Assembly (NCBI GenBank): GCA_010909165.1
Contig: VJWM01000202.1
Coordinates: 62,001-126,000 of the forward strand
DNA: 64,000 nucleotides
From: Anthoceros angustus
Lineage: Eukaryota > Plantae > Anthocerotophyta
Reading direction: 5' to 3'
In this document: in pieces, positions 649 to 5,879 of the stretch
Numbering within the stretch: the stretch's first letter is position 1
Layout: every line of letters starts with the position of its first letter
Notes under the pieces: generated by a model
Told to the model about the DNA's origin: nothing
Database searches by the model: none
Seen by the model: the letters and a program-made list of their open reading frames with translations, nothing else
Made by a program: the position numbers and the translations under genes

Positions 649-768
649 AGGCACGCTCCCTCCGCAGGTATTAACCTGTTCAGGTGCGAAGGGACTCTCT
701 CAGCCTGCTCAAGTGCACAACACTGGCTCACAGCCAGGCTGCAACTGGAACAAGCACCCCCGGTGCCT
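649..768 (-). ncRNA. TPP (THI-box) riboswitch aptamer in THIC 3' UTR
   Basis: Minus strand reads aggcaccGGGGGUGCUUG...CAGGCUGAGAGAGUCCCUUCGCACCUGAACAGGUUAAUACCUGCGGAGGGAGCgugccu, matching the plant TPP aptamer core; P1 aggcac/gugccu; extended P3 with a cuggcu/agccag hairpin. Confidence 0.95.
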
Positions 769-1214
769 TGTGTGATTAGCCAACTTGACCGACACGAAAC
801 AAAAGGCCATAGACACGTTCTCAAATCAAAGCTTCAAAAGATTATTACTCCTCATTGCGAATATACAGCCCTGCAATCTGACATAGATACTATCACCGAA
901 GGCAGATACAGATAACATCATGCCAGACGCAGGGTAAAATATGAAGAGCTAAAGAAAGCTGACTATGTGCGCACACCAAACCCCAAGCACGAGTGAGCTG
1001 CCACAGCTCGCATGCAGGGACGTCCACTGACGTCAACCCTTTTGACAACTTGCAGCTAGGGAGTTGTTGTTACCAATCCTGTCTTCTCCTGCACGTCAAA
1101 CAGCACCAGTTTCGAGTTCAGTTACGACTGCACTCCGGACAATAGCAACCCATGACAAGCTTGAAGACAAGCACAAGCCAAGAAGCTGCTGGATAAACGA
1201 TCCCAACCTTTTCC

Positions 1215-3723
1215 TCACTTCGGAATGGATGATGTTCCACCAACCAGTCCATTCGAGATGTAGCTCTCAGGCAAGTAGATTTCTCCACCCACTTCACCCC
1301 ATTGCTCACCACTGATTGTCTTCTTGGCAGCTAGGAACTCTTCACTCATTCTGTCCATTCCACCTTTGATGGCATCATGGGCATCACCGTAGCCATGTTC
1401 TTCAGCGTACTTGCGCACATCCTCAGTGATACTCATGGAGCAGAACTTAGGGCCGCACATGGAACAGAAGTGTGCCACCTTGGCACCCTCTGACGGAAGA
1501 GTCTCATCATGGTAGGCAAGGGCAGTGACCGGATCCAATGACAATGCAAATTGATCTCTCCACCGGAACTCAAACCTCGCCTTACTCAAGGCATCATCCC
1601 AAGCTTGAGCAAATGGGTGACGCTTTGCAAGATCTGCAGCGTGAGCTGCAATCTTGTATGAGATTACACCCGCCTTCACATCATCCCGATTGGGAAGCCC
1701 CAGATGTTCTTTAGGAGTTACATAGCACAGCAGGGCGGTGCCAAGAGCTCCGATGTTGGCAGCACCGATAGCGGAGGTTATGTGATCATAACCAGGGGCA
1801 ATGTCTGTTGTCAAGGGACCAAGAGTGTAGAAAGGGGCCTCATTGCACCAATCCAACTGCTTCTCCATATTTTCTGGAATCTTGTGCAGGGGAATATGAC
1901 CAGGTCCCTCATTCATGACCTGCACGTCCTTCTCCCAAGCTCGACGTGTGAGCTCCCCTTGCACTGCTAGCTCGGAAAACTGAGCCTGATCATTGGCATC
2001 GTAAATGGAGCCTGGCCGCAGCCCATCACCAATTGACAGAGAAATATCATACTGGTTGCAAATATCCAAGATATCATCCCAGTGCGTGTATGCAAAATTC
2101 TCCTTGTGATGTGCCAGGCACCATTTAGCATGAATAGAACCTCCCCGAGACACAATGCCCGTCATTCTTCGAGCAGTGAGAGGAATGAAGCGCAACAGAA
2201 CTCCAGCATGAATCGTGAAGTAGTCCACTCCCTGTTCAGCTTGCTCGACGAGAGTTTCTCTGAAGACTTCCCATGTCAGATTCTCAGCAATCCCATTCAC
2301 TTTTTCAAGGGCTTGATAGATGGGGACAGTCCCAACGGGAACCGCTGAGTTGCGGAGGATCCACTCCCGAGTCTCATGGATGTGCAATCCCGTAGACAGA
2401 TCCATAATGGTGTCTGCACCCCACATAGTGGCCCACTGCAGCTTCTGAACCTCTTCTTCAATCGAACTTGTGACAGCAGAGTTACCAATATTGGCGTTCA
2501 CCTTCACCAGGAAGTTCCTTCCCACAATCATCGGCTCAAGCTCCAGATGCCGTTTGTTGGAGGGGATGATTGCACGACCACGGGCTACCTCAGACCTGAC
2601 AAACTCGGGGTCAAGATTTTCCCTGGCAGCACAGAACAACATTTCCTCCGTGATAACTCCCTGCTTTGCATAGTGCATCTGGGTGAATCGGTTGTCACTT
2701 CGGGCTTCACGCTTTCTGATCCAATCTTCCCGGAGCTTAGGAAGCCCTGCACAATAACAACCAGACACTCTTGTAAGCTACTGACCCTTACCCCTCAACA
2801 CAAGAGCCCCCGGTTCTTCCACATCCACATCGACAGCACATTCATGCGAGGGCAAGCATCAAGGTCCACCTGTCCTCGGGTCCACCTTCTGAGGGCCACT
2901 GGTGTCGTAAGTGTCAAACGGCTTCTCCCCTCCTGACAAATGCACACGCCTGAACGGAACATGCAGTACAGAGCCGGTGGCCACATGCACGACTTCCCTG
3001 TGCACCCGTTGGGGTGATACAAACACAGAATCAGCTGTCAGGATCTCACACAGGGAGTCAGCACTCACAGAGAAACACAACTCCCCTCGACATATCAGCT
3101 GCAGCCAGGCCCAACACAGAGAAAACGTCAACTTCTGAATACTCCATCAGCTGCGGACAATCACGACAGACCATTTACCGACAGCAACCCACTGTCGCAG
3201 ATACCTACATTGCCACGACAGTAACAGCAAACAAACATTTCATGCTCACACCGCCAGAGACACCTTCGAACCACGCCATGCAGACCAGCTGGGCAAGCCA
3301 ATTAACCAGGCCCGGCCCCGACAGGAACCGCCACAATCCACCACATGCAAACCCACCCCAGAGCTCCACTCACTTGACCTCCTTAGTGCTGTTGGGGAAG
3401 CACTCCTCGAAGCTGGGAATGGGGAGAAATTCAGGCGCCTCGGGGTCGTGCGTGGGCCGGGTCCGCTGGTGCTTGGCCTTGGCATCCCCATTCCCAGTTG
3501 CATTACGCAGCGGGACCTCCCCGGCGGCGGGCGCACCCACCGTGAGCTGCGCCCGCACCCTGACTCCCCCAGGCACCGTGAGCTTCAACTTGCAGGACGC
3601 GGGCGCAAAGGCGGAGGCGGATGCTAGCTGCGCGGGCCCGGCCACGCCCTTTCCGCCGCAGAGCGAAGAGCAGTCGAGCAGAGCAGCCATGGTGGTAGCA
3701 GCGGGAGCGATGGAAGCAGCCAT
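1215..3723 (-). CDS. THIC: Phosphomethylpyrimidine (HMP-P) synthase, plastid-targeted; exons ~3723-3374, 2997-2870, 2746-1215
   Basis: [44 protein letters not shown] and CSMCGPKFC (Fe-S) motifs; Ala/Ser-rich transit peptide; GT-AG introns keep the frame. Confidence 0.97.
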
Positions 3724-4692
3724 TGCCGTGACGAGACTGAAACTGAGACTGAGTCGAGCCGAGACGCGACGGAAGCGGGCTTTTACTTCACCGCAACTCT
3801 GTGAAGAGGGGTGCAAGAAAGGCATGGGTTAACACCTGTGGTTAAGCCGCTGGCCTACCGGCTACGGTGCGCCTCCAAGTACAGTACATACGGAGGAAAC
3901 GGGGAACGACAAAGATACACGCCGGCCAGCTTGCCGCCTGCAAAAGTATCTCTTCCCTCGCCCCTGGCGTCACGCTCGTACGTCACCTGACATACAAGTC
4001 AGGTTCCACTATTTCTTGTTCTTGATGAGATTCCATTCCCTGCTGATGCTTATCCACAGCTTAACCTGCGACATCTCAACAAGTTCATTGCACATTGCAC
4101 TGGGATGGTGGCTGCAGCAAAAGGCAACAAGCAACCAGCAAGGAGCATCCATTGGAATAAACAAAACTCTCATCTCATTTGCGAGCTTCTGAAATGAGGT
4201 TTCTGAACCTGAAGCTTTGAGGATGTGTTCAATTGTCTCTCATGTTTGTGGTGTGTTTGTCCTGCTATTCCAACTGTTTGAGTCACCAAGGACATGTCTT
4301 CTTAGCTTGTAAGTTGGCTTTGTACATGGCTACATTCCCGTATTGTAGTTTGTGCTCCTGCGCTGGAAGGGATAGGGTCAGTTTGAAAGATGCACTTTGT
4401 GAGGCTGGGAGAGCGGATAAAGCAAAACGTGGCTAGCAGCAGCTAAGAGAGGAATCCTTGGCGATATTTAGCTGCGTCCGGTAGCGGGAAAATATCAGCA
4501 ACAGGGGACGGTCGGAGGTCACCCGCGACGGGTGACGGGCGAAGGGCGAGGGTAATGCGGGGTTGGGTGTCCCTGTCTTCTGCCATAAATATCCGGCTCT
4601 TCGGTTGTTTTTCAGCATCCAGCAGCAGGACAGGCTCCGCTCAACTCGCGTGGCGTCTGTGCTGTCAGCTTTGATCGTTCGTGCCCTTAGCT
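3724..4692. promoter_or_regulatory. Divergent (putatively bidirectional) promoter and 5' UTR region between THIC and THI1
   Basis: 969 bp between opposed ATGs; TATA-like CATAAATA at ~4584; AAATATC cores at 4463-4469 (rc), 4489-4496 and 4587-4593. Confidence 0.5.
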
Positions 4693-5879
4693 ATGGCTGC
4701 CTGCACCGCCTCCATGGCCGCCCTGAGCGGAGCTGTTGCGCTGGATCTCAAGGCCGCATCCGGGACCTCCAACTTCTCTTCTGCCTCCTCTTCTCTTGCG
4801 GGAGTGAGGTTTGCTGCTGCTGGCAAGGCCGGCGTGTCTGTCTCGCAGGCGCTGCGGGCCACCAGCGCCTCGCTGTACTCCGACTCCAAGTATGACCTCA
4901 ACAACTACAAGTTCGAGCCGATCAAGGAGTCGATTGTGGCGCGGGAGATGACCCGGCGCTACATGACGGACATGATCACGCACGCCGATACGGACGTGGT
5001 GGTTGTTGGGGCCGGGTCCGCGGGGCTGTGCTGCGCTTACGAGTTGAGCAAGAACCCGAATGTGAAGGTGGCCATTGTGGAGCAGTCTGTGAGCCCCGGC
5101 GGCGGCGCCTGGCTCGGGGGCCAGCTCTTCTCCGCCATGGTGGTGAGGAAGCCGGCACACCGCTTCCTGGACGAGCTGGAGGTGGCGTACGACGAGCTGG
5201 AGAACTACGTGGTGATCAAGCACGCCGCGCTCTTCACCTCCACCGTCATGAGCAAGCTGCTGGCCAGGCCCAATGTGAAGCTCTTCAACGCTGTTGCCGC
5301 GGAGGACCTGATCATCAAGGAGGATCGCGTCGCCGGTGTGGTTACCAATTGGGCCCTGGTGTCCATGAACCACAACACGCAGAGCTGCATGGACCCGAAC
5401 GTGATGGAGGCCAAGGTGGTTGTCAGCTCCTGCGGCCACGACGGTCCCTTCGGCGCCACCGGCGTCAAAAGGTTGAAGAGCATTGGCATGATTGATAAGG
5501 TTCCCGGGATGAAGGCCCTGGACATGAACACCGCGGAGGACGCCATTGTGCGATACACTCGGGAAGTCGTGCCCGGCATGATTGTCACCGGAATGGAGGT
5601 GGCTGAGATCGATGGATCACCGCGGATGGTAAGCAAGCTTAACCCGCTACTGCAGTCTCATTCGTTCGTTGGCCTTTGCCTGCGTCTTACACTCGTACAT
5701 GTTGCCTTCTACATCAGGGTCCTACCTTTGGTGCGATGATGGTCTCTGGCCAGAAGGCTGCGCACCTCGCACTTAAGGCGTTGGGACTCCCCAACGAGAT
5801 TGACGGAACCTACCGATCGGGAGTGCACCCAGAGCTTGTCTTGGCCTCTGTTGACGAGGAGACATCTGCATCTGCTTGA
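4693..5879 (+). CDS. THI1: Thiamine thiazole synthase (THI4 family, Cys-type); exons 4693-5628, 5718-5879
   Basis: [33 protein letters not shown] (sulfur-donor Cys), [25 protein letters not shown] joined across a GT-AG intron. Confidence 0.97.

Follow-up and report, generated by a model that had tools for sequence, protein, structure and literature searches.

This study concerns a stretch of 64,000 nucleotides from the hornwort Anthoceros angustus (GenBank assembly GCA_010909165.1, contig VJWM01000202.1, positions 62,001 to 126,000 of the forward strand), hereafter the window, in which the two thiamine biosynthesis genes THIC and THI1 form a divergently transcribed, expressed and real head-to-head pair. 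THIC is the hydroxymethylpyrimidine phosphate (HMP-P) synthase of the pyrimidine branch, a slow radical S-adenosylmethionine (SAM) enzyme, and THI1 is the thiazole synthase, a suicide enzyme; both are thus costly to supply. Our results revealed the same head-to-head arrangement in Spirogloea muscicola, and THIC and THI1 as neighbours in ferns. The reading with the fewest assumptions is that the linkage was most likely inherited from the common ancestor of Zygnematophyceae and land plants and was repeatedly lost thereafter.

The original prediction, made from the letters of the window alone, had claimed divergent THIC and THI1 genes with 969 bp between their ATGs and a single thiamine pyrophosphate (TPP) aptamer behind THIC, and this anatomy is confirmed by family, Rfam and transcript evidence. 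The main features are as follows.

1215-3723, minus strand: THIC coding sequence, three coding exons, intact
4693-5879, plus strand: THI1 coding sequence, two exons, intact
3756-4644: intergenic region between the transcript contigs, 889 bp at most, a candidate shared or bidirectional promoter
639-771, minus strand: TPP riboswitch aptamer in the 3' untranslated region (3'UTR) of THIC, with a 40-nt P3 extension (Rfam RF00059)

The transcript evidence comes from four RNA-type runs in total, including one public run whose zero-mismatch, intron-skipping contigs behave as same-species RNA. Both genes are expressed, as same-species contigs match each of them with 0 mismatches, and the splice pattern is the same in the transcript contigs of three related species at 90-99% identity. 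From the THIC ATG (3723, minus) to the THI1 ATG (4693, plus), which are the first ATGs in the transcript contigs, the gap is 969 bp (3724-4692). The contigs themselves end at 3755 (THIC) and 4645 (THI1), which leaves at most 889 bp between the transcripts, contig ends being unable to fix the exact start sites. If a bidirectional pair is defined by divergence and by less than 1 kb between the transcript starts, THIC and THI1 are such a pair. Their exons and introns are listed below.

3374-3755, minus strand: THIC exon 1, 5'UTR of at least 32 nt, ATG at 3723, contig end at 3755
2870-2997, minus strand: THIC exon 2, joints 2745/2869 and 2996/3373 (cut +1), GT..AG, seen in 2-4 runs
1208-2746, minus strand: THIC exon 3, catalytic core, stop codon at 1215-1217, bounded by transcript joints
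1089-1207, minus strand: THIC 3'UTR intron, joint 1087/1207, GT..AG, seen in the same species and two relatives
1-1088, minus strand: last THIC 3'UTR exon, long, extending beyond the start of the window
4645-5628, plus strand: THI1 exon 1, 5'UTR of at least 48 nt, ATG at 4693, contig start at 4645
5629-5717, plus strand: THI1 intron, joint 5627/5717 (cut +1), GT..AG, seen in four of the four runs
5718-6100, plus strand: THI1 exon 2, stop codon at 5877-5879, followed by a 3'UTR without a TPP aptamer

The identity of the two enzymes is clear from several kinds of comparison, in which the database, family and structure searches were run on single exons and the joined THIC and THI1 proteins were used in local scripts only. 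For THIC, all introns are GT..AG, and the joined exons give a stop-free open frame of 669 aa. The largest minus-strand open reading frame (ORF), 1215-2768, matches the Pfam family ThiC_Rad_SAM (PF01964) over its full length (E 1.6e-183, profile positions 1-419 of 420), 498 residues align to the Arabidopsis THIC structure 4N7Q, and the C-terminal CX2CX4C iron-sulfur motif is present as CSMCGPKFC, aligned to the motif of 4N7Q; the highest identity among database proteins is at most 92%. For THI1, the joined exons give a stop-free open frame of 365 aa. The plus-strand ORF from 4681 matches Pfam Thi4 (PF01946) over its full length (E 3.4e-109, profile positions 2-231 of 235), and the comparison with the Arabidopsis THI1 structure 1RP0 (E 3.8e-143) likewise shows a full-length family member with the dinucleotide fold of the FAD/NAD type. 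The active-site cysteine that donates sulfur is kept in the stretch SSCGHDG, which is identical to 1RP0 in the alignment; it corresponds to the residue of Arabidopsis THI1, an enzyme of the suicide type, that is numbered Cys205 in a survey of THI1 evolution (PMC11521341). Both proteins have an Ala/Ser-rich N-terminus, which in THIC exon 1 is a probable transit peptide.

On the question of linkage in other lineages, single-exon protein searches were followed by tblastn of the window proteins against the neighbourhoods of the homologues (10 kb). The coordinates for Spirogloea were taken from EukProt headers, and linkage in ferns was judged by locus tags on the same contig or chromosome. In Spirogloea muscicola three THIC/THI1 pairs are found, all of them divergent, with gaps of 791, 886 and 954 bp; in Mesotaenium endlicherianum the two genes are located on the same scaffold, ME000161S, with the consecutive JGI ids 2530/2531; and two Adiantum species together with Ceratopteris, all of one fern family (Pteridaceae), have five pairs whose locus tags follow each other directly or nearly so.

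Spirogloea scaffold s17: THI1 253227-254896 (minus), THIC 255688-259675 (plus), gap 791 bp
Spirogloea scaffold s285: THIC 29400-33363 (minus), THI1 34250-35920 (plus), gap 886 bp
Spirogloea scaffold s33: THI1 559317-560991 (minus), THIC 561946-565920 (plus), gap 954 bp
Adiantum capillus-veneris: pair GOP47_0000611/0000612
Adiantum nelumboides: pairs L7F22_036109/036110 and L7F22_033138/033136
Ceratopteris richardii: pairs KP509_03G079100/079200 and KP509_30G007700/007800

By these tags, the fern genes appear to be next-door genes that lie far apart, as would be expected in very large genomes. In the THI1 tree the linked copies of ferns are spread over three or more fern sublineages, in agreement with a duplication of THIC and THI1 as a unit; with its unresolved backbone, the tree gives no verdict on a single orthologous origin of the linked copies of different phyla. 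As for chance, the expected adjacency of one THIC with one of two THI1 copies is about 1e-4 when about 25,000 genes are assumed, and about 1e-4 to 1e-3 per genome when few copies of each and 25,000-37,000 genes are assumed. With the pair present in three separate lineages, the adjacency cannot be put down to coincidence.

Nevertheless, a number of results weigh against an old and functionally meaningful linkage, above all that most of the lineages sampled do not have it. By tblastn, the partner gene was not found within 10 kb at any of eight loci:

Riccia sorocarpa, THIC locus: no THI1 within 10 kb
Calypogeia fissa, THIC locus: no THI1 within 10 kb
Diphasiastrum complanatum, THIC locus: no THI1 within 10 kb
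Selaginella moellendorffii, THIC locus: no THI1 within 10 kb
Closterium NIES-64, THIC locus: no THI1 within 10 kb
Ceratodon purpureus, THIC locus: no THI1 within 10 kb
Sphagnum jensenii, THI1 locus: no THIC within 10 kb
Chara braunii, THI1 locus: no THIC within 10 kb

Moreover, none of the 30 metagenome THI1 loci with more than 3 kb of upstream sequence (80 loci taken) has a head-to-head THIC, and the three Spirogloea pairs, being near-identical, count as one lineage. Around three of the paired fern genes there is no other called gene within 10 kb, and over a distance of more than 10 kb the retention of the linkage in ferns cannot be due to a core promoter used by both partners. In A. angustus itself the genome is compact, the next gene following about 960 bp past the THI1 stop, and in a generally compact window a gap of 0.9 kb is by itself no sign of constraint. 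Contig and tag data further show THIC and THI1 unlinked in Riccia fluitans, Taxus chinensis, Quercus rubra, Salvia splendens, Magnolia sinica and others. The sole metagenome locus with both genes is L078, a bacterial-looking operon. The original prediction had named the lack of linkage in related genomes as a refutation, and the outcome is the opposite: the pair recurs head to head three times in Spirogloea (0.8-0.95 kb) and as neighbours in Pteridaceae, though it is missing from the liverworts, mosses, lycophytes, Closterium and Chara sampled. The prediction as a whole is partly supported, and it is strengthened on its evolutionary side, the linkage being old and no accident of one genome.

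The region between the two genes deserves a closer description. In the four RNA-type runs, positions 3838-4601 are free of transcript contigs, and on the 5' side of THIC the contigs of the relatives lose their match to the window upstream of 3727-3771. One group of motifs stands out:

4463-4593: AAATATC three times in 131 bp, at 50-180 bp upstream of the transcript start of THI1

The last of the three sits in the TATA-like sequence CATAAATAT. The window has 17 AAATATC sites where 6.5 are expected. Three of the 17 are those in 4463-4593, and none of these three matches the strict evening element AAATATCT; the trio is accordingly a lead and not evidence. A scan for sigma-70-type promoters found nothing, and as the scan is of a bacterial type the result is not meaningful for a eukaryote. 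On the arrangement of the two genes, a shared bidirectional promoter for THIC and THI1 is plausible.

The TPP riboswitch is assigned to one gene of the pair. The RF00059 match reaches 58.9 bits, above the gathering score of 54.3, covers the whole model (1-105) and is the sole TPP match in the window; a permissive search of positions 1-7000 gave no second TPP aptamer even at E<=5, so there is none behind the linked THI1. The 3'UTR intron of THIC begins 8 nt past the stop codon, and the same-species THIC contig (3307 nt, 0 mismatches) spans 1087-400 with a further 569 nt past 400. The aptamer is retained in the THIC transcript contigs, among which no other isoform is found, and its minimum free energy fold has -56.9 kcal/mol. 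A duplex scan for pairing of a 5' splice site with P4/P5 gave weak candidates of which none is clear, and the spliced isoform is not among the contigs. Judged by the family model, the element is plausibly a TPP riboswitch, predicted to act on the splicing or the 3' processing of THIC. The other THIC loci scanned have a TPP aptamer in all cases except Calypogeia. As a separate observation, two THIC copies of Selaginella moellendorffii stand head to head with about 2.3 kb between them (L004:6011-7787, minus, and 10094-12045, plus) and are 78-86% identical to A. angustus THIC; the upstream copy is absent from the called genes, and a TPP aptamer (12336-12438) is located behind the downstream copy only.

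The thiazole branch has its own connection with the aptamer. Another THI1-like contig, with about 85% identity over 5093-5845, is joined in opposite orientation onto the aptamer core 649-707 (joint 707<->5845), and a contig with this joint is present in three runs, those of the same species and of two relatives. Thus a paralogous, unlinked THI1 mRNA in A. angustus carries a TPP aptamer of its own, and the thiazole branch therefore has riboswitch feedback, but not on the copy linked to THIC. The earlier claim that TPP feedback acts post-transcriptionally on THIC was incomplete, as the unlinked THI1 copy also carries an aptamer.

To bring these results together, we propose that the linkage is old, that the intergenic region is shared regulatory DNA and that TPP feedback is added post-transcriptionally, a joint reading to which we give a probability of roughly 0.7. 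By this proposal the linkage would have been kept head to head at less than 1 kb in A. angustus and Spirogloea and as neighbours in Pteridaceae ferns, and would have been lost several times, in liverworts, mosses, lycophytes, Closterium and seed plants; the equal orientation and spacing in A. angustus and Spirogloea would be due to common descent. The roughly 0.9 kb between the transcripts would act as shared regulatory DNA that sets the transcription of both branches together, and this joint transcription would probably respond to light or the time of day, as that of Arabidopsis THIC and THI1. On top of this, TPP feedback would be exerted post-transcriptionally through the riboswitch in the THIC 3'UTR, and the thiazole branch would receive its own TPP feedback through the second, unlinked THI1 copy with its aptamer. 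A more ambitious form of the proposal takes the pair as a selected regulatory module older than land plants, in which one short bidirectional control region synchronises both branches; it would explain both the orientation and the spacing of about 0.9 kb conserved in Spirogloea and A. angustus over a very long time and the riboswitch-free state of the linked THI1, in contrast to the unlinked THI1 copies of non-seed plants with their riboswitch, and we put it forward tentatively, at odds clearly below even.

The linkage may also be ancestral and yet neutral, two early streptophyte neighbours that were never separated in a few slow-rearranging or compact genomes and that have separate promoters and no coupling. 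The many lineages that kept the pathway yet lost the linkage would be understandable on these terms, as would the fern partners more than 10 kb apart, the short intergenic distances that are normal in the window, and the TATA-like element that THI1 has for itself about 55 bp upstream of its transcript start. We consider such neutrality unlikely, however, because gene order is otherwise almost fully scrambled at such depth, the surviving pair consists of exactly the two committed enzymes of one pathway, and the divergent orientation and the sub-kb gap are kept in both Spirogloea and A. angustus.

These last two features also bear on a convergent origin, by which the pair would have arisen separately in Zygnematophyceae, hornworts and ferns and been selected for co-regulation of the two branches. 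Its patchy distribution would be accounted for in this way, and other thiamine genes have indeed been joined independently, namely TH1 and THI1 in Picochlorum (PMC6141220) and thi4 and thiC in L078. But three separate events would be required, each with a probability of about 1e-4 to 1e-3 per genome, and the same orientation with a near-equal gap is explained more simply by descent, so convergence seems to us quite improbable. The last alternative, an adjacency created by an assembly artefact or chimeric join, could appeal to the lack of RNA contigs over 3838-4601. It was rejected as hardly credible: the sequence is continuous with no runs of N in the region, both flanks match same-species transcripts without a mismatch, and Spirogloea, an independent genome, shows the same arrangement three times. 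An old linkage with shared regulation is accordingly the reading we prefer.

By definition, a plant metabolic gene cluster brings together at least three adjacent, non-homologous genes of the same pathway. Among the larger ORFs scanned within about 22 kb, no third thiamine gene (TH1, TPK or HAD-type TH2) was found, the neighbours up to that distance being proteins of the lipase_3, Metallophos, PPR-E and PAP2 types. A cluster of three or more thiamine genes was therefore rejected, and the locus is a pair only. The nearest neighbour is the following gene.

6840-9971, minus strand: class-3 lipase-like gene, a single ORF of 1043 codons, convergent on THI1

The THI1 transcript contig (5503 nt) continues for about 4.1 kb past 6100 and covers this lipase-like gene, which means either that the two mRNAs have overlapping 3' ends or that the assembler merged them. 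Further away, two adjoining plus-strand ORFs with PPR repeats and an E motif at 15565-18616 are probably one PPR gene of the organellar RNA-editing type, split by a stop or a short intron.

Some observations concern the database records of THI1. Several NCBI records call THI1 'triosephosphate isomerase' (Salvia divinorum, Orobanche minor and Ranunculus cassubicifolius) or 'HMP-P synthase' (Turnera subulata), and these (P0155, P0208, P0316 and P0289) look like annotation slips. Moreover, two proteins of about 550 aa (P0286 and P0287) outscore the self-score of Mesotaenium THI1, which suggests a doubled Thi4 domain; one of the two, a UniRef entry, is attributed to the amphipod Hirondellea gigas and is possibly a contaminant.

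If the proposal of old linkage with shared regulation is true, a deeply conserved control region of less than 1 kb would offer a natural test of the transcriptional coordination of the two branches, as well as a compact two-gene cassette for engineering. It would also be rare for two non-homologous genes of primary metabolism to have stayed together from streptophyte algae to ferns, and this pair would be one of very few. No report of a THIC-THI1 linkage was found in the full-text literature, subscription journals lying outside the search, so that a prior mention is possible.

Compared with Arabidopsis, where THIC and THI1 are on different chromosomes, A. angustus has the two genes head to head. 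The THIC genes themselves are much alike, with the same enzyme (as judged by 4N7Q and the iron-sulfur motif), a 3'UTR intron right past the stop codon and an aptamer further down the 3'UTR, but the A. angustus contigs show the aptamer-retaining form only. The 3'UTR TPP riboswitch of Arabidopsis THIC (At2g29630) was described by Wachter et al. 2007 and Bocobza et al. 2007, as cited in PMC11521341. That 2024 survey of THI1 evolution, which included an analysis of THI1 synteny, describes non-seed-plant THI1 genes with a 3'UTR TPP riboswitch, reports that gene neighbourhoods are not conserved outside eudicot blocks, and makes no mention of THIC among the neighbours. The second A. angustus THI1 copy resembles these riboswitch-bearing genes in family and aptamer, unlike the THIC-linked copy, which has no aptamer; unlinked moss THI1 copies with a TPP aptamer were also found in our data (L006, L007 and L009, 72-75 bits).

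Two other systems bring thiamine genes together. In Picochlorum, a tandem TH1 pair with an adjacent THI1 has a bidirectional promoter, is co-induced and is stated to be conserved within the genus only (PMC6141220); among published arrangements this one comes closest to the THIC-THI1 pair. As in A. angustus, thiamine genes are divergent there in a nuclear genome of the green lineage; however, the partner is TH1 (HMP-P kinase / thiamine monophosphate synthase) and not THIC, and unlike that genus-confined pair, THIC-THI1 spans Zygnematophyceae, a hornwort and ferns. In the metagenome contig L078 (8120-11168), an aptamer at 8120-8227 is followed by thi4, an ORF of 200 aa and thiC, all on one strand; the contig has a GC content of 33%, is densely coding and looks bacterial, and its Thi4 is 68% identical to plant THI1 and its ThiC 48% to plant THIC. 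Such a bacterial thi operon shares with the A. angustus pair the co-location of thiazole and pyrimidine genes under TPP control, but it is polycistronic with a riboswitch in the leader, whereas in the A. angustus pair the two genes are divergent and monocistronic and the riboswitch is placed in a 3'UTR. Altogether, co-functional divergent gene pairs are known and the THIC-THI1 pair is one more of them; what is unusual is the depth of its conservation for plant primary metabolism.

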